DNA of 60,653 nucleotides, the filler included, from Sluysia triapertura (taxonomy: Eukaryota), in NCBI GenBank assembly GCA_046118255.1. It is 5 parts of 5 records of this genome, joined end to end, with 100 filler letters (N's around TTAATTAATTAA, not from the genome) between each part and the next. Parts side by side here need not be neighbours in the genome. Positions count along the whole stretch, not along the records: positions 48,667 to 60,653 come from JBJNIA010149719.1; 4 more parts are not named here. One strand, 5' to 3'. The stretch's first letter is position 1. Each line of letters starts with the position of its first letter. The translations under genes were made by a program, and so were the position numbers. Below the pieces are notes generated by a model. The model searched no databases and was not told where the DNA came from. It saw nothing but the letters and a program-made list of their open reading frames with translations. This document shows positions 48,667-60,653 of the stretch, piece by piece.

Positions 48667-48743
48667 GTAAGACGCTTACTATAGCTGGACCCTGCTCAAT
48701 TTTATTTTGCCGTAGGTTTACAATTCATAAGAAAACCACAGCA
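48667..48743 (+). mobile_element. 3' end of an LTR (same family as 12827-13508)
   Basis: ...ggaccctgctcaatttt...aagaaaaccacagCA is the reverse complement of 12827-12895. Confidence 0.75.
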
Positions 48744-49003
48744 ATATTATTTTGTTTGTACTATCAAATATTTCTTGATTTTATTATAACCAATTACACT
48801 ATCAATTTATTGTCAGATCTTTTAACACTTTTTGATTTTATTGTTGACAATGTACTATCAATCATTAACATTTACTTTATAATTTTAACTATGTGTATCG
48901 TCAACATTTTTCTTTTGTGTGGTTAAATTATTTTAAAAGAGTTTTGTTTTCATTCTAATACTAATAATTGTAATACCTAATTAGGAAATTTTTTCTTAAT
49001 GCC

Positions 49004-49805
49004 AAACCTACGGCAAAATAAAATTGAGCAGGATCCGGCTACAGTAAGCGTCATACCACTAATAGTTAGCACCTCTGTAGCTTATAAGTGAAAATTCTTA
49101 CTTAACTTGCTTAAAAATATAACTCTTAACACGTTTAGAGGGTCTTAAAATATCACAATAAATAAAAAATCAATTAAATCCGTGAAATTTATTAAATTAA
49201 TTATACAAATTCTATGATTACAAATGAAGTAGAATAAAAAGTGAAACGTAATGAAAAGTATATGTTACGATCTAAATCCTCTTGGGATATTCGATCAAAT
49301 GGTAGATATAATTTGAGTATAAAATTTCCCCTCACAATATCGGGGTCCCTGCAAAATTTAATAACAAAATTGATTTTACGTGTATTTTATGATTTTGATT
49401 TTAATAAACCAAAATCGCCTTAATAATAAAATATTTTACCCTTGCATGGATCTGATGATAAAAGCCTTGACGAATCTGTTTGACTTTGATTCCACGTAAT
49501 CGCAGATTTTCCAAAAACGATTGAATAATTGTATCGAAGATAACTAAATTAAATGGCTGATTATTTAATATGGCGATTTTCATTAAACTGATGCTAGTTT
49601 ATATACTAGTCATCAGTCAATGAAAATCGATGGAATGTTCTAGAACTTTCTAGAAGCTTCTATTCTATTTATAGAAGCAAATTTTCTTTTTTAGAACTTC
49701 TATTTTCTTTTTTGGAAAATTAATATTTTTTGGTGTTTTTGTCATTTATAAATAATTTTAAAATATTTTGTGAGATTTTAAATGGTCGTGATGGCAGACC
49801 TAACA
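49004..49805 (-). mobile_element. LTR copy (same family), missing its last ~25 nt
   Basis: The minus strand starts TGTTAGGTCTGCCATC. ctagtttatatacta..catca..caat..aaatcga matches 13377-13415, and aaaattgagcaggatccgg matches 12860-12880. Confidence 0.75.
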
Positions 49806-51594
49806 GACATATAAGTAAGCACTAACATCCGATTTTCTTCATATTCTTTTTCTTAACGCTGAAAATCTATGTACTGGCCCTTTAGTGAGTAAGTCCAGTA
49901 TCATCGAGAACTCACTAAAAATTGAATAACTTAACAAAAATAAAGAAGATAAAATTAATTAAAGTTCACATACAACGACTTAGAGTTTAAAATTTATTTC
50001 CTAATATATAAATACTACAAGTTAAGAACAGATTAAACTTTCTTACGTATCGTCTATTCTTTGCATTCTCCACAATATATTGCCTTTTTGTATATGTTTT
50101 ATCCAATTTATTCATTTTATTTAATAAAATTTATTAGTTGTTTATTATTAATTTATTTCGAGTGTTAAGTTAATTAATTGTTAATTTACTCTAAATATCA
50201 AGTTTATTAAAGTTTAGGGAATTAAGCTTTTAAGCTATCGCTATTAAGAACTAACTTTTAGTACACGATTGTCTTAAGCATAATTTAGTAAAAATCGAAG
50301 TTTGTCAATTTAACAATAAGAATATTTTCTTCACGTAGAATTTTTCTAGAAAACCCTGAAGCTACCTCTTCTACGTATATAAATCGTTGACTTCAGGCGG
50401 ACCCAAAAGATTACTTAAAACATATTTGCTGAAACATAAGCAGTTAAGAAAAAATACCAGCAAATGTTAACCCGAATCTGATTATTAACAAATTTGTTTG
50501 TTTTATACTGATGTTTTTCTATATAATCTGTTGTTTGTTCAATCTATATTTTTTTGTCCTGTCACTTTGGATTAACCGGATTCTACCACATATTTAAATA
50601 TATTAATCTCAAATAATCTTAGGCTATCAATTTTTAAATGAATCAAATATTAAATATTTCGCAGTATAAAAATAAAAATTATACTCAAACGTCATGTCAG
50701 AAAGAAAAACAAGTCTAAAATTGTAAATAAAATTCTAAAGTTATTAAAAATTTAAATTATTTTAAATATTACCTTAAAAAAGAAATAAAATTATAAATCC
50801 ATTACTAACACTTTAATAAATTAAATAATTAAATTAATCTTAAATAATCTTAACATACAATATTAGTAACCATATTCGATTTAATCTAATATAATTATGC
50901 AATTTTATTAACAAAGACAACCAATCTATTTTGGCTAAGTCCCAAACATAAAACTAACATAATAATCAACACTTATATTATAACAGCCAAAAATTAACAA
51001 TTATAATTACTTGTATCAAAATTATATTGAATTTGATGCTGTAAGTAATGAAAGCAAAATTGTAAACATGACATATTTTATTCTAAGTATAAATATGCTT
51101 ATTTGCCGTTTGCGCAGCAAATTAGATCATTGTCCTTGATCTCAGAAAATAACCATGCATCAGGACAAAATTAAGAAAGTTATTCATATTACTCATTATT
51201 TAAAAATCAATAAATATTATATTTAAATGGTAAATAAATCTGTTTATAGATTGTTGATTGATGCTGCTTATAATAAACAAAAAATATAATTAAAGTTCGA
51301 CAAAAGCATTTCTGATAAGTTTAATTAAACACGTGTATTCTAAATTAATTAGTGAATTTATAAAATCGAAATAGTCAAAATAGGTTTAGTAATGTAGTCA
51401 GATAACTTTGATTTTTACAAATGTGTGCATCACAAATTCATTATTATTTATTAGTGGCACACAAACATCTCAAATCATTCTCGTGAATAAGTTTATAAAT
51501 TTGTGTGCTTATGATAACTCATCGAATTTGAGTTTATTTATATTGAAACCTATATATAGACTCAATTTAACATCAGGCTTCTATTATTAGTAAA

Positions 51595-51609
51595 ATGTCA
51601 CAATTTCTG
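51595..51609 (+). CDS. p53: p53-family gene, putative first coding exon (MSQFL)
   Basis: aaaATG TCA CAA TTT CTG|gtaagt; phase 0 matches the next exon. Confidence 0.6.
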
Positions 51610-52110
51610 GTAAGTTTATTTTGCTGTAATAGGTAAAGATTTTTAAATTGTAAAAATTTAATATATTATAATTTTATTGAAGTTTATTTTTAAATGCATA
51701 ATTATTGGTATTAAAATATTTGCACCTATTAAATGTCTACTACTCCTTATATTAACGAACGATAAATAAACATCGTGACGAATACTTTAAATGCTTAGCG
51801 AAACAACTTTGTTGCCCAAATTTAAGCAGTCGTCATCTTATTCGACTTAAGTAAAAGTAATAAAATTGTAATTTGTACTACCGACTCAACCAATACTTTA
51901 ATAATAAAATTGAGTAATAATAGTTATTACCAAAATTAACAAATAAAATCAAAATTGTGAATGGTTTGTGGATTATTCATTATGTAATAGATTATGATCA
52001 ATGACTATTATAAAGACTCGCCATTAATATTAGTTGCCATATATTTACTAAATATTGTGCGTAAGTTTTAAATATTTTTTATTAAAGTTTATAATTATTT
52101 TAATATTAAG

Positions 52111-52382
52111 AATACGGTTTACGAACAATCTCAATTTAGTTTGCCGATGTCTACCAGTACTCATGTTGTTTTACCTCTTAAATCATACAACACATCTACG
52201 AGTAATTCTACGAATATTGTTAGTTCTATAAATAATGGTAGTTGCCCTCATAATCGAACATCTGCACAAATTTACCCAGTTCTCCAAACAAATTCAGTAG
52301 AATCACCCATGACTAAAATAGAACCATTAGTTTCATCAAATTCTTTATCACCGTCATTCTTATCAGATGATATGCCATCACT
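52111..52382 (+). CDS. p53: p53-family gene, N-terminal Ser/Thr/Pro-rich exon
   Basis: taag|AAT ACG...TCA CT|gtaggc; an open frame ending DDMPS(L), spliced over a 38-nt intron into TPYPGAYNF. Confidence 0.8.
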
Positions 52383-52420
52383 GTAGGCCTTATTATTCAT
52401 AAATTATTATTTTTTTACAG

Positions 52421-53053
52421 TACTCCGTATCCAGGTGCTTATAATTTTAACATATTTGTACCAAACGGTGAATATGACGAATCCAAACGAAAAGGTCAGA
52501 CATGTATTTATCAAGCAACTGAAGATGGAAATCATGAAATGTATACAAAACCAAGTCCACATTATTGGCGTCTTAATTATTCTGTTAATCCCAAATATAT
52601 TAATGAATTAAATTTAATGTCAAGTAACAGTACAAGTCGTGTATTTGTCCGGCTTGTTCCAGTATATGGCGATCCTGAAAAAGCACAAAATATATTAGAA
52701 CGTTGCCCCATACACAAAGAACGTGGGATTAAAGCAATTCAGGAATCAGGAACGGCTGGTGAATTGAGTTCACCCAACGTTGGCAGTTCAACTCCTGTAA
52801 ATAATAGCGAGTTAATTTGGCGTCAAAGAAGTATGGTGTTAGTTGAAAAATCGTCTGCTTGTTACATTCAAGACCCAGTTACAAAAAGAGTTTGTGTTCT
52901 ACTACCATGGGAAACTCCTTCTGAAGGACAAGAGCACGCTAGTGTCAATTGTCAATTTGCTTGCTTCAATAGTTGTTTTAATCAAGACAGTAGAGGTAGA
53001 AAAACATTATTTTTAATTGTTACTTTGGAAAAAAATGATGAAACTGGAATAAA
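52421..53053 (+). CDS. p53: p53-family gene, main DNA-binding-domain exon
   Basis: tttacag|T ACT...AA|gtaagt. Contains YPGAYNF, KGQTCIY, VRLVPVY, ERCPIH, VLLPWETP, FACFNSC and LIVTLE; all four zinc ligands are present. Confidence 0.93.
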
Positions 53054-53125
53054 GTAAGTACATTATTGATTAATAATTTAAATATCAATTATTAAATGAA
53101 TTTTTAAATGAATTTTTATTTTTAG

Positions 53126-53524
53126 AGGTCGACCTGAAGTTCTAGGTCGTCAATGTCTTCAATTCCGAAGTTGTGCATGCCCCAGTCGAGATTGGCGTGA
53201 TAAGAAAGGTTGCGGGAATAATAATACTCATCAACCACGTAAGAAATCACGAGATGATTTTATTAATGGTGGATCGTTACTTAATGTTTCAACATCTGGA
53301 AATAGTGGCGGCATTCATTCTGGTAGTGTAACAATCAATATGGGTGGTAAAGATGCGATTATTCGAGTCTTGCCATCATTGCCAGGCTTAGATGAAGCTG
53401 TGACTGCATTATTATGGGGTTATCTGTGTAGAAAAACATTGGATATTAATGAAACAAGTTTAGAGCCTATTATGGAAGTAGTACGGCAATGTAAAGGAAT
53501 TGAAAATCGAATAATTGATAAAAT
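53126..53524 (+). CDS. p53: p53-family gene, exon with the end of the DBD and a putative oligomerisation region
   Basis: ttttag|A GGT. VLGRQCLQFRSCACPSRDWRDK compares with human [22 protein letters not shown]. The frame continues into ORF 53340; donor AT|gttagt. Confidence 0.9.
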
Positions 53525-53761
53525 GTTAGTTGATTTTAGTGATTAAACTAAATATTACCGATTTCATTGCAAAAGATGCATCAGTTATAAAAACATGTTA
53601 TTAATCTAAGTGATATAATTTTATATATTACACTAATGCTAAATTGTTTATTTTTATTATCTTAAATAGACTTTCATATCAATTATTAATTATTTTTTCT
53701 GTAAACTAACAGTGATAAATCAAGTTAACATTTGTCAAAACATAGATGATTTTATTTTTAG

Positions 53762-53800
53762 TTCATCTCTAACAAAAAGAAGAAAGCTAGTTAAGGTTTA
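53762..53800 (+). CDS. p53: p53-family gene, small basic exon (SSLTKRRKLVK, NLS-like); 3' boundary uncertain
   Basis: tttttag|T TCA, phase-compatible with the upstream exon. A donor at 53801 (gtaact) keeps the frame; the donor at 53796 does not. Confidence 0.5.
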
Positions 53801-53873
53801 GTAACTGTAATAATGGCTAAATCAATATTTTTTATTAATTAATATTATTTAATGACGCTAAATTTTCATCTAG

Positions 53874-54375
53874 TACATCAGATGTAATACCTGCTATTGA
53901 TCAACAAGCAACTCAACATCATTGTAGTCCATCAATCACTCCTACAGACTCTCAAATATCTCCAAATCAAACTAATCAAGTTCATTCGTTAAGTTCCATA
54001 CCTTCTAATTTATCATGTATTACTACTAACACACCCGGATCTTATGTTTACACTACTTCACCTTTAACAACATCCCCTGTTAATACCAGTACTCAAAATA
54101 ATTCTGTTACGTCTAATAATGATTATGCAGTACATTCGTTTTTTTCAGCTACAAATCCTACTGGAACTACATCTCGTACTCCAAATTCAACAACTGAAAC
54201 ACATCAATCCAGTTATCATAACAACGGATCCACACCTTATCATCAGCAACAAAATCATGCCACATTACGAAATACACAGTTCAGTCATATGATTCCTAAT
54301 TACATCGCAATACAGCCTCAATTTCATTTGAAACCTTATGAAGATTTCTACACAGAAGTTAAAGTTCGATTTTAA
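53874..54375 (+). CDS. p53: p53-family gene, terminal Ser/Thr/Pro/Asn-rich exon (missing from the ORF track)
   Basis: ctag|T ACA, open for 166 codons to ...YEDFYTEVKVRF-TAA; no SAM domain is visible. Confidence 0.78.
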
Positions 54376-57300
54376 TTTTCTAAATTTAAAATTATAATCA
54401 GATAAATATCCAAAGTACTTAATATAATTAAAAAATTACAAACATTTTGAAGTACAGTCCTAAATTGTATCTAAATATTTACAAAGTTAATATTAAAATA
54501 CATTATGTAGTAATGTATTCGTCATTGTCTACAAATAATAAACAAATGAACTTTTAGATATCAGAAATTTAAAATAGTAGTACAAATCACAATGACGTTA
54601 AGTTAAATATTTTAAATAAATGTCATAATTTTTAAATTTATAACTTTAAAATGTTTTTTTGCAATTTAAAGTTTATCTTTGTTAGATTTCAATCAAATTG
54701 GTTTTTAAGTCGTGCTGGGTTAAACTTTAAACTTAAACTTTACAGGAAAACAGATTTAACTTAAGGAATCCGAACTACAGTCCACTATTCATCGTGTAAA
54801 GTAGGCATATATGTAGCTTCTTTGAATATCAAATATTTATATTAACTGGAAGGTCAATATTTTATACTTGCGAATATCATTGTGAAGCATGTGATTCTTA
54901 ATAAATTTTAAATTTAAAACGAATAAACAATGAATAAATTTTATTATCAAAAAATCTAAGTCAACAAGCAATAAATGTTGCTTATTAAGTGTTTTCATTT
55001 AATTATTACATTTTAGCTGCGATTTTAAGGCACTGAATTAAAATTATTGATATGACCGAAATAGATTTTACTTGGATTTAGTAAATCTTGGATTAAAAAA
55101 GAAAAACTTATTACTTTTAAGTAAAGCGTCGTTTGATTATCCAAATATTCTGGTCCAGATTGCTGTGTGATTTCAATTTTGAATATTCCAATAGTTTTAT
55201 ACGTTTACCCATATAAATTTATGTGAAAATTTGTAAACGCTCTATTGATGCCAATTATGTTCTATTTTTAAAATATTTTTTAACTTCTGACTTACTGACT
55301 CTCAAACCAGTATTTATAACACAAGTTAAGGTGGGATATTTAAAGTTTCTATTATTAGCGTATAAGTTGTTATCATTTACTTTATAATATTATTTATTAT
55401 CATTATTACATGTTATTATTTTTATTGATTGGTTGCTTATTTTTATTTACTATTATTTTATTTTATAATTATTTTTCACTAATGAATATTATAATTTTTA
55501 TATTACCAATATTGTATAGTTATCCTATTTGTAGAGGTTGTGATTGGATCAACCATAATATTAGGTTTTATATTATGGAGATTTCTACTGAGAAATACAT
55601 AAAAGACAAAACAATTATTATAAAGATAAAACTATTATAATTAAAAGACGATTTTGTCAAAGGTATACTTAAATGCTAAAAATTTATTTAACTGTAAACT
55701 TAATTTAAATTATTTAGTTATAGTAATTGTAGGTTATGTTTATGTAGTTTCCACCCAACAATGTTAATACATCAATTCTATATATTTTTCATTGATATTA
55801 CGACCCATTAATTTTTGAGTTCCATTCTACAATAAGTTTTGTATTTATTTTCTCTTTGTAGTTATGGAATTATTCCAACATTGTTAGCTCACAGGTACTC
55901 ATAATTTATTAAAAGTACTGTACTACACATTTCATTACAATAAATTAGGCAAGCCAAAACTATGACAGTAACCTAAAAATAAAAAATTAAATGCATCTAC
56001 AACTTCCTTAATAAGCAAAGAAAAAGGATTATGAATCATACTGATGTGGTTTTGCTTAAAAATAAATACCTACAATCATAAAATGAGTATTTCAAAGCTG
56101 TAAGTTCGTCAGTCTTACAAACTTAAGGGCTAGTCTATAGAGTTTGAAAGAATTTATGAAGGTCAAATCAAAAACGTAACAATTAAATCCGGCAGTAGTA
56201 TAAAACAGTTTTCTTGTCGTATTAATAAAAGTTAAGTTTTTTGCAATAAATATTTAATTTAATATTAGATTAATCAATTGAATTTAGTAATGGAATTATA
56301 AATTAGAAATATATTAGGATTCCGCTTTTTTATGTGAGGTTATTATGGTTGTGATTTTATACAACATTCCAATTGAATAGTATCTAAAAATTAATTATTT
56401 TGCTACCGATTTTAGAACTGGTGTGTGAAAACAAATAAAATCAACTTTAATATTTTACAACTATAAATTTATTAATTAAGTTTGATAGTTCTTTTCAATT
56501 AAGTCAAATTATGTTAAAATATAATTGTTTTAAAAGAAAATGCAATAGTAATAAAATTGTACCAAATTTACTAGATTATCAATAATTTAAGTACAATAGT
56601 TTCAAATACGAATTTTGTTAAGGAATATTTTAAAAAATTCTTAAAATATAATTAACATAAATGAAGTATATTTTATTAAACTTAACTAAATAGTGTTAAT
56701 ACTTAAGATAAATTAACTAACGGTTAATAATAAATTTAGTATGGTTGCTACAAAAATTTAGAAACTGTTGTCGAAGTATCCGTTATTATTAATTATTAAG
56801 AACTAATATGGACTGAATCTGTTTGATGTTAAATAACTCAGTGATGAAGTGTTCATCGATCTCAGATTTTAAAATGTTTGGTGTTATGTTTGATATAAGA
56901 AATACAAAAGGAGTATTGTTTTTACCACAAGAACGATGGATGCCATTGACATTTTACTAGAAAGATCAAAGAATGTAAAATATTTAGTTTTGATTTATCT
57001 GTTAATTCTATGGATATTCTTACGTGATATTCAAAAATTCAAATAATTCATTGCAACTTATTGTGTCTTGTTGGTGTATATAAAAATAACACAATTTTTT
57101 CAAACAACACTGTAATGCTATATCATCAGGTATTTTATCCAATATCTTAATGATAACATTATCTCTTTCTTTGTTGATATTTTGGAAATTTGTACATCAT
57201 TGTATAGTAAATAATGTGCATCGGAAATCCTTTATAGATAAATGCCTGTGTAAATTAGACTTTTGTCACCCACTACAGTGCGTTGTTATTCATAAATCAG

Positions 57301-57849
57301 TATTATATTCGTATATTAATGACGGTCCCAGATGAGCAAAGAATTTATGGTTCCGTAGTACTGAATAATGGTTATCATCCTTTGATGATGAACCTACATA
57401 TTTGCATCTATTCATTATGAACACAGTAAATATTAATAAGATCATAATTAATGCAATAAATAATTCTTCTGCTATTATTAGAATAATCTTTTCAAAATGC
57501 TTCCAAAATTGTAGACCTTTCCTATCGCTTTATATTGCATAATGTAGTCATTTAATGACTAACTTTTTTACATTTATTATTGTGTCTACCTTCCGAGAGT
57601 AGGAACTCGGAATTGATTGTTATGTCGTCATTAAATAAAATCGAATAGCCTAAGGAGTTATCATGCTCTTAATAATCAACTATTGTAGTTGTAAAAAAAT
57701 TAGATTACATACGTAAACTATAGGTTTCTTCATTTTTATTTATATTTTGGAAAATAAGGGTAAATAAGTCTTTGTTTGAATTAATTGTATTTTTTTGGAA
57801 GCGATGCAATAATTTTTATCTAAAGTTTTAAATTTTGAATACTTTAATT

Positions 57850-57867
57850 TTATTATTATTATTATTA

Positions 57868-57915
<48 letters not shown>
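57850..57915. repeat. (ATT)n microsatellite
   Basis: Seen directly. Confidence 0.9.
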
Positions 57916-57916
<1 letters not shown>

Positions 57917-59308
57917 GTCCGCCTAGATTAATACTCTGGATACTGAAAAGATTAAACAACCTTTGTTTAATAAATTATTAAATTATATCTTACCCAAATA
58001 ATATTTTGGTTTAATTTGTTTAATCCAAAATATTTCAAACCAAACAATCGAGATAGTTTACGATTTAAATAGTATTTATTTTTAAATTTAAGTCTGGCTA
58101 CGTTGTAATTTCAATAATTTCATCTAGATTTTGTAATTTAATTATTTAAATGTATTATTATTTAAATGTATTCGAAGAAAAATCATATCATATTCAATGA
58201 AATATCTTCAATGCAGTTTAGAGGCCTACTAATTTTTTAAAACAAGCTTTTCTTTTTTAATATGTGTTTTAAAAATTATATTATTAAGTGTCCGTTAAGT
58301 AATGTAATGGTTCTTGTTTAAAGCTGGCAACTATAAAAATATTGTTGGCCTTATACTGGGCCCTGATTGCCTAAATATTCGAGGAATTTTTTCAAGTTAT
58401 CTTATGCCTACTACTTTTTCTGCTTTTAAAAATATTGTATTCGTTTATTGTTCGTTTTTGCTATTCAAATTCATTCAACCATTTCAATATGATTTTTTGC
58501 ACCTAATTTTAGTATAATAAGCACTAATGTACATATGTATATGTCCAAACAGTATTTTTATTGGGATAAATGTGTCACTATATGCGAAAGACATACACTT
58601 CATGCGACGTTCTGATCACTAGAATATTACCAACATGTACAAACCTACAAACTCATCAAAAATATCTCGGTATTATAACTACGGAAATGTCCCTGGACAG
58701 TATAAATTAAATGCTTTTTCTTTGCAGGGTTTATTAGAAATTTATTGAGACATATGTCCTAATAGGATTGAAATGGTTAAAATAATACATTACATCTTCA
58801 ACAAATTCACTAATTCAATATCGAATTGCAATATGTTAAAATTACAATTTAGATCATTAGTTTCTTAAATAATATTTATCATGTAAATTTTTTAATTATA
58901 ATTTATAAATTATAGTTTTTTAATTATAATTTTGTAATTATATATTTCATTATTTCAGATGCCAATTGATATTACAATGAATTATGATCAAAATTGATAA
59001 TGTTTTGACACTGCAAAAGAAATATATTACGAGATATTATTATTATCAGTATCATCATTGTTATTATCATTATTATTATCACTACAAATATTAATATATT
59101 TATATTTATTGTGCTTGTCCTTTGAACTTGAAACTGGATATAAAGATACAGACTAAGGTCAAGTACTGCTGTTATGATACAATGTATTATATTTTTATCG
59201 TATTAAACCTAAAAATACATACATTTTACCGGTGATAAAAATTTGACTATTAGACCTTGGCCTAATTTTATTTGTAATCTAAATTTTTTTTAAATTATAT
59301 TTAGTAAA

Positions 59309-59360
<52 letters not shown>
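59309..59360. repeat. (ATT)n microsatellite
   Basis: Seen directly. Confidence 0.9.
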
Positions 59361-59361
<1 letters not shown>

Positions 59362-60653
59362 AATAATATAAATACTAAAATGAAAACATTAATAAATTTA
59401 GTTCTTACAAAGTATTAGTTATATTTATAAAATAATAGTTTATATTTTATGTAATATACACATTTCTATATTGTTTCTACAATAATTTTTTTCTAGACTA
59501 AAATCAAATATCTAATTAAATATATAAAATTGTTCACCAATATTTTATTTATATTATCTTAATAAAGTTTACTATTGAAGAATTATTTTATTTTTAGAAT
59601 TATTCTGTAAACTCATTCAAGCAGAAATTATTAACGTTTTCTTTGTTATCCACGAAATATTTATTTTAAAATTTCGCAAACATTTTCACTTGAATTTAAA
59701 ATTAAATGAGTAATACGTAAAGTTTGATTCTTTGAATCCTAAGTAGCTTTGTTTTTATAAAAAAATTAAATTTTCATCCAATTCAAACATTTCAATCTAG
59801 TGGTTTATAAATCTATTTTGCATTGTTTATGAAGCTCTTGAATTTGTTGCATCCTTTTTTGTGTTGAGATGATTTCTCTGTTGACTTGTCAGACAAAAAC
59901 ACAAATTAATTAGTTAGAATTAGAACAATTTAAAAATTTTAAAATAATTTGAAAATAATGTTTTTTTCACAAATATTTAATATGTTTAACTACTTCATCA
60001 GTATTGCTAAATAATGAGTGGCATTTCGTTAAGTCATTGTGCAGTTTTCAAAGCTTAACGATATTTTATCTATATAAGATAATCCACATTTTAAAAGCCC
60101 ACTTGAGTCTTTGTTTTACTTTTGATATAGAAGGCAGTGATTTCCTGAAAAAAATTCTGTTTAATAATATTGGATGTAAAATATTCTTTAACACCAATTA
60201 ATTGATTTATTTTTAGAAAAATATAGACATATTTCTATCTTCTAAAGTCCTTCGAAGGTTCTGTAACAATTTAAGCATTATTATAATTCGATGTGTGTTT
60301 GAAATCGATTGTTCTATATTTGGTATATTAGTCATAGTGTTAAAATCAAATATAGATCACAGAAAAGGACATTGTCCGGTACGGGTTAAAAAACGTATTA
60401 TAAACAATGTTGTAATCAAAAAATTAATTATATCCAAGAATATGAAGACACATCTGGCAGAAATAAAATAAAAACAAAGTAAACTCTATGCTTCGGGTAT
60501 CTTCTATCATTTTGTAGTTCAAAATATTCTATTCAATTTTATAAAACAAAGAATTATAAGATACATTAAAACGATATATTAATATTACACATAAGTTATG
60601 GAATGCATTGTTTGACTAATTGTAAATCAGTCATCCGACTCAGTGTGTCAAAT

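Follow-up and report, generated by a model that had tools for sequence, protein, structure and literature searches.

A planarian p53 orthologue in Sluysia triapertura with tryptophan at the position of the human hot-spot residue R282

Structure of the gene

The window, by which we mean the whole stretch of 60,653 nucleotides of Sluysia triapertura DNA that was analysed (assembly GCA_046118255.1), is made up of five joined parts, and its last part (positions 48,667 to 60,653) comes from record JBJNIA010149719.1. On the plus strand of this part, at 52421-53205, lies a P53 DNA-binding-domain gene; these coordinates take in exon 3, a 72-nt intron and the start of exon 4. The model for the whole gene has five exons:

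51595 to 51609, plus strand: putative exon 1 (MSQFL), placed by a donor GTAAGT at 51610 and a phase-0 fit to the acceptor AG at 52109-10
52111 to 52382, plus strand: exon 2, an S/T/N-rich N-terminal region with SDDMPS at its end; open frame 52072-52383, donor GTAGGC at 52383
52421 to 53053, plus strand: exon 3, most of the p53 DNA-binding domain (L1 to S9), by PF00870 and phmmer
53054 to 53125, plus strand: intron 3, 72 nt, phase 2, GTAAGT..TTTTAG
53126 to 53524, plus strand: exon 4, coding for S10 and helix H2, an NLS-like basic stretch and a C-terminal block that is conserved, by Pfam P53 and phmmer
53525 to 53873, plus strand: intron 4, 349 nt, GTTAGT..TCTAG, acceptor at 53872-73
53874 to 54375, plus strand: exon 5, an S/T/P/Q-rich C-terminal tail of 502 nt with the stop TAA at 54373-75, in a 178-codon open stretch

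Putative exon 1 has a weak likeness to the N-terminus of the Schmidtea mediterranea protein SMED-P53 (MAQQY), and exon 2 matches residues about 5-90 of SMED-P53 and of Dugesia japonica P53 (Dj P53), including a VSSN..SP.F.SDDMP motif. The intron before exon 3 is 38 nt long, with the acceptor TTTTTTTACAG, and intron 3 presumably agrees in position and phase with intron 7 of human TP53 (codon 261). At the other end of the gene, the predicted exon 4-5 junction (IIDK-I-TSDV) agrees with IIDQFTSNL of SMED-P53, and exon 5 carries an SPSxTPxDSQISPN motif common to the Smed and Dj p53 C-termini. Retention of intron 4 would bring in an in-frame stop at 53544-46, which splicing at the predicted junction would bypass. 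An earlier note on this DNA had described an intact and well-spliced gene, and the model bears this out: a script frame check on the joined exons gave 1821 nt, or 606 codons, with a single terminal stop; each of the four introns has GT-AG borders, and GC is 35% in exons versus 21% in introns. The sole public DNA run with the locus is concordant at every base at a depth of about 17, so that the TGG codon considered below is not contradicted by reads; the run is probably that from which the assembly was made, and the agreement is thus not independent.

The two insertions peculiar to this species, the shorter of which is very AT-rich, and the in-frame stop that follows from retention of intron 4 might suggest a p53 duplicate that is decaying or evolving neutrally. 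We consider such a pseudogene very improbable, given an open frame of 1821 nt over five exons, all bounded by canonical splice sites and closed by one stop at the end, a GC content clearly higher in exons than in introns, retention of all zinc ligands and DNA-contact residues, and two blocks of 18-21 residues that are 100% identical to expressed orthologues. Read from its sequence, the gene is an intact, canonically spliced member of the p53 family, previously unannotated, and the predicted protein of about 606 amino acids is a sequence-specific, zinc-dependent transcription factor. Pfam, Rfam and tRNA scans of the remainder of this piece (GC about 25%) gave zero matches, and it also carries two microsatellites, (TTA)22 at 57850-57916 and (ATT)17 at 59309-59360.

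The DNA-binding domain and loop L3

The p53 domain that had been recognized by eye is recovered by profile at a level well outside what chance would give, exon 3 matching Pfam P53 (PF00870) with an E value of 2.9e-15 and 57.1 bits, above the cut-off of 27, and exon 4 continuing the same profile (positions 167-188) with an E value of 0.0036. The following features were located in these two exons:

52593 to 52622, plus strand: 10-residue insertion KYINELNLMS between S3 and S4, very AT-rich; by alignment not in Smed or Dj p53
52701 to 52724, plus strand: RCPIHKER, with R175 and the zinc ligands C176 and H179, by the alignments
52722 to 52796, plus strand: 25-residue insertion in loop L2, RGIKAIQESGTAGELSSPNVGSSTP, species-specific by alignment
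52962 to 53003, plus strand: loop L3, CFNSCFNQDSRGRK, with C238, S241, C242, a 2-residue insertion QD, R248 and K249, by phmmer, MAFFT and AlphaFold
53166 to 53198, plus strand: R273 and helix H2, RSCACPSRDWR, with the Trp codon TGG at 53193-53195, by gap-free alignment
53334 to 53387, plus strand: 18-residue block INMGGKDAIIRVLPSLPG, identical in three planarian p53s

By phmmer and MAFFT the zinc ligands C176, H179, C238 and C242 are all aligned and conserved (RCPIHKER and CFNSC), as are R175 and the DNA contacts K120, S241, R248, R273, A276, C277 and R280, with the second R of RGRK as the counterpart of R248. The earlier note had listed the same zinc ligands, R175 and all of these contacts except A276 as kept, and the alignments agree; the strings that it gave for L3 and helix H2 are exact on translation. 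The immunoglobulin-like beta-sandwich with its loop-sheet-helix fold is seen in the AlphaFold model of the core of SMED-P53, the orthologue and not the window protein itself, which has a pLDDT of 87.8 and TM scores of 0.75-0.87 to the crystal structures of the DNA-binding domains of p53, p63, p73 and the Alvinella homologue.

The L2 insertion is in frame and has a GC content of about 45% (counted by eye) against 21% in introns, and it therefore reads as coding. A missed intron was considered in its place and was rejected on this GC content and because no in-frame GT-AG pair fits. The C-terminal block INMGGKDAIIRVLPSLPG, which has a weaker form (G..P.LPG) in the p53s of Schistosoma, Hymenolepis and Calicophoron, is possibly an oligomerization element. 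Comparison of the block with 15 canonical tetramerization domains gave an hhalign probability of 0.35%, a C-terminal tetramerization domain had no Pfam match, and the AlphaFold prediction for exon 4 alone was of low confidence (pLDDT 42).

Three structural hot-spots of human p53 had been reported in the earlier note as non-canonical in this gene, with G245 replaced by Q, R249 by G and R282 by W; the R282W equivalent stands and the other two do not. Loop L3 exceeds that of human p53 by two residues, and a count without gaps from C238 consequently cannot fit both ends of the loop. The insertion QD falls after position 244 both in a 44-row MAFFT alignment and in phmmer comparisons with p63 and the Alvinella p53 homologue, which were run with exon 3 of the window as well as with SMED-P53. 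The resulting pairing is G245 with S, M246 with R, N247 with G, R248 with R, R249 with K and P250 with T. The reading of Q at 245 comes from the gap-free count; for G245 no clear-cut counterpart can be named, the alignments placing Ser there. R249 corresponds to lysine, a conservative change, whether judged by phmmer, by MAFFT or by the predicted strand S9; in the AlphaFold model of SMED-P53, S9 begins one residue past RK-T, as human S9 does past RR-P. Of RGRK, the GRK is invariant among the planarian proteins and the leading R is replaced by G in those of Schmidtea and Dugesia; neodermatan proteins have N-K-K-P at 247-250. The lesson is that comparison of hot-spots in L3 requires an alignment that allows for insertions and deletions.

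Orthology of the gene among flatworm p53 proteins

With exon 3 as the query, the best phmmer match was Dj P53 (UEC50122.1; E value 1e-63, 65% identity), and a search with this protein led in turn to SMED-P53 (B9ZV22). Over the DNA-binding domain the window protein is 64-65% identical to each planarian protein, and the Smed and Dj proteins are 80% identical to each other. This exhaustive protein search covered 1.84 billion representatives and returned 63 matches at E<=0.001, with Dj P53 the best by a wide margin; in the minority of these that were named or inspected, no likely second neodermatan paralogue was seen. Two multi-copy proteins were observed as well: P0002, from the representative search (769 aa), has 13 tandem copies of a p53 L2/zinc-site fragment of about 57 residues, and the P0006 cluster (855 aa, assembled from public runs) has a tandem pair of complete p53 core domains.

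A maximum-likelihood tree was built from 38 core domains, with no p53-2 sequence among them. In this tree the window protein, D. japonica and S. mediterranea form a clade (SH-aLRT 98), and the planarian trio is joined to its sister clade, the p53s of Schistosoma, Hymenolepis and Calicophoron, with an SH-aLRT of 100. The stem branch to the flatworm clade has a length of 2.48, and flatworm p53 cores deviate at further near-invariant sites (V173, H193, R196, S215 and H168); for these reasons the tryptophan at 282 is to be seen as one feature of a fast-evolving domain.

The two planarian proteins (SMED-P53, 479 aa; Dj P53, 473 aa) share with the window protein the blocks GRQCLQFRSCACPSRDWRDKK and INMGGKDAIIRVLPSLPG and the SPSxTPxDSQISPN motif, the same 2-residue insertion in L3 followed by ..GRKT, and the same changes in the S2-S2' hairpin. 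The window protein differs from them in its greater length (about 606 aa versus 473-479 aa) with a longer S/T/Q-rich tail, in the S3-S4 and L2 insertions, which it alone has, and in single residues, with F not Y at 239, I not V at 125 and R not G opposite M246. Three neodermatan proteins labelled 'tumor protein p63' (Schistosoma haematobium XP_051074305.1, Hymenolepis microstoma CDS28156.1 and Calicophoron daubneyi CAL8071949.1) are taken to be p53-1 from their grouping with Smed-p53. They have in common with the planarian proteins K132G, H193S, S215C, K249, K168, RSCACP and the C-terminal G..P.LPG block, and are unlike the window protein in having K282, a retained E286, an L3 that is three residues longer and a length of 685-1060 aa; they also have Asp at the site of the zinc ligand H179 and Lys at that of the minor-groove contact R248.

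The suggestion had been made that the gene might belong to the parasite-specific p53-2 group, as a member in which three structural hot-spots depart from the canonical residue (G245Q, R249G and R282W). The RDWR string is real, flatworm p53s are highly divergent and a gap-free count from C238 does yield Q and G, all of which would fit. However, in the tree described, which holds no p53-2 sequences, the closest relatives are p53s of free-living planarians with a clade support of 98, and Dj P53 is the best match; L3 is two residues longer and three methods give R248 as R and R249 as K; and the other two planarians have Gly in place of the residue that would be 'R248' on such a count. Wendt et al. 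(2022; PMC9478680) found p53-2 (the Smp_136160 orthologues) in trematodes and cestodes only, with no copy in 19 free-living flatworms, and placed the planarian Smed-p53 and Dugesia p53 with p53-1, the lineage orthologous to Smed-p53; S. mediterranea has a single p53 (PMC9478680; PMC11732142). We consequently give almost no weight to membership of p53-2 with three altered hot-spots. Since the gene falls in the planarian clade (SH-aLRT 98) and p53-2 is absent from the 19 free-living flatworms of that study, we assign it on sequence as an orthologue of Smed-p53 and Dugesia p53 and not as p53-2. The animal is a triclad-like free-living flatworm outside the Schmidtea/Dugesia pair, and its p53 is of the single-copy type.

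Tryptophan at position 282

Human R282 is one of the six classic p53 hot-spots. The segment LGRQCLQFRSCACPSRDWR aligns to human p53 without gaps, so that the substitution of R282 by W, as claimed in the earlier note, is unambiguous, and the accompanying change of G279 to S is likewise present. A block of 21 residues that includes W282, GRQCLQFRSCACPSRDWRDKK, is identical in the window protein, SMED-P53 and Dj P53, and W282 is for this reason a fixed planarian character; it is selectively maintained, and is neither an error nor a private allele. The novelty of the observation is reduced in part, as RDWR was already public in SMED-P53 (UniProt B9ZV22) and Dj P53 (UEC50122.1). The planarian W282 nevertheless seems to be undiscussed, with zero papers in the searchable literature that join R282, planarian and p53; the original Smed-p53 paper lies outside that search.

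Position 282 was surveyed in the matches with a readable H2 motif and in the rows of the MAFFT alignment. Arginine is found in most matches and in 31 of the 37 non-flatworm alignment rows, lysine in neodermatan flatworms, spiders, a locust and a nematode, isoleucine in two unnamed proteins, and tryptophan in planarians and in the leech Helobdella robusta. The presence of W, I or K in these proteins indicates that the position is not absolutely constrained. The leech protein (XP_009011341.1) has W282 in RLCACPGRDWD, with A286 in place of E286, as an independent origin of the residue, and is unlike the window protein in its canonical L3 (HGGYNRRP) and its G279; its gene model is without L1 to S2', so the hairpin is not comparable and the leech provides no independent test of how Trp is accommodated. 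The human R282W mutant (PDB 2J21, 7B4E-G, 7EEU) agrees with the window protein both in this residue and in its place on the helix. When exon 4 was compared by phmmer with human p53 chains, the R282W entries 7B4E-G were best (E value about 0.009, the others 0.2-0.8), and exon 4 also matched p63 by phmmer.

In human p53, E286 is the salt-bridge partner of R282. From K120 to P142 the planarian and human lengths are equal, and the alignment of the S2-S2' hairpin is thus free of gaps. Among 37 other proteins of the p53 family, positions 124, 125, 127, 132, 133 and 286 show a conservation of at least 82%, and at each of them all three planarian proteins deviate: T125 is replaced by I or V, S127 by Q, K132 by G, M/L133 by N and E286 by K, and C124, where most others have W, also belongs to this set. 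F134 is H in the planarian proteins. The covariation of 286 with 282 is not strict, as two I282 proteins retain E286. Y/F239 and N240 are present here and are also common in R282-bearing invertebrates, so that they are not specific to W282.

Structural work on the human protein has shown that helix H2 is packed onto the S2-S2' hairpin through R282 and that R282W loosens L1, with partial DNA binding retained at 20 C (PMC8268744). The mutant, a somatic destabilizing allele, costs 3.3 kcal/mol in an otherwise wild-type context of hairpin and E286, against a gain of 1.49 kcal/mol from N239Y, and a single strong suppressor of R282W is not known (PMC3197647); in the human protein, Y/F239 and N240 count among the suppressor states (PMC6393305). 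The window protein, by contrast, has W282 as its wild-type state, together with a rebuilt hairpin and K286. One explanation for the data, and on covariation in effectively one lineage the most likely mechanism by which Trp282 is accommodated, is that planarian p53s no longer have the polar network that joins Arg282 to the S2-S2' hairpin and to Glu286, another arrangement having taken its place. The rebuilt hairpin (T125 to I/V, S127 to Q, K132 to G, M133 to N and F134 to H) and Lys286 would then allow the indole to pack on a more hydrophobic surface. A low body temperature would reduce the stability that is required, and a cold habitat probably helps; Y/F239 and N240 may contribute extra stability that is not specific to W282.

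Natural compensation of W282 is plausible from these sequence changes. We propose, tentatively and with the odds somewhat against it, that planarian p53s are functional wild-type 'R282W' cores in which residue 286 and the S2-S2' hairpin have changed together in evolution so as to pack the tryptophan. If this is so, they would offer a natural multi-residue answer to a hot-spot mutant for which no single strong suppressor is known, and grafts of the hairpin could show how helix H2 may be re-anchored in human R282W. Another possibility is that Trp282 is uncompensated, and has been tolerated since a cold-living animal needs only marginal stability of the core, with later epistasis locking the W in. 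The partial DNA binding that remains to human R282W at 20 C (PMC8268744) would be in keeping with this, as would the W of the ectothermic leech and the I or K of other invertebrates at 282. However, the perfect conservation of 21 surrounding residues in three species and the coordinated change of the hairpin and E286 look like integrated packing, and most other cold-living invertebrates in the set have retained R282; we regard tolerance without compensation as possible but less likely than not. Taken together, it is highly probable that the gene is an orthologue of Smed-p53 and Dj p53 with a fixed Trp282, for which a rebuilt hairpin and a cold body are the likeliest means of accommodation. In planarians, W282 would be a compensated pathogenic deviation.

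The gene itself is ordinary, being the orthologue, so far without annotation, of a much-studied regulator of planarian stem cells. Both Smed-p53 and Djp53 have roles in the proliferation of neoblasts and in the epidermal lineage; for Smed-p53, a part in the response to genotoxic stress seems to be lacking (Wendt et al., 2022; PMC9478680; PMC3552358; PMC9768645). By transfer from Smed-p53, control of neoblast proliferation and differentiation of the epidermal lineage are the predicted roles of the Sluysia protein. At the level of residues the interest of W282 is modest but real, the state being shared by all known planarian p53s and found independently in a leech. The mutant state of a classic cancer hot-spot is the conserved wild type across a whole flatworm lineage with demonstrated p53 function, and planarian W282 may provide a system for the study of how a loop-sheet-helix motif is stabilized without Arg282.
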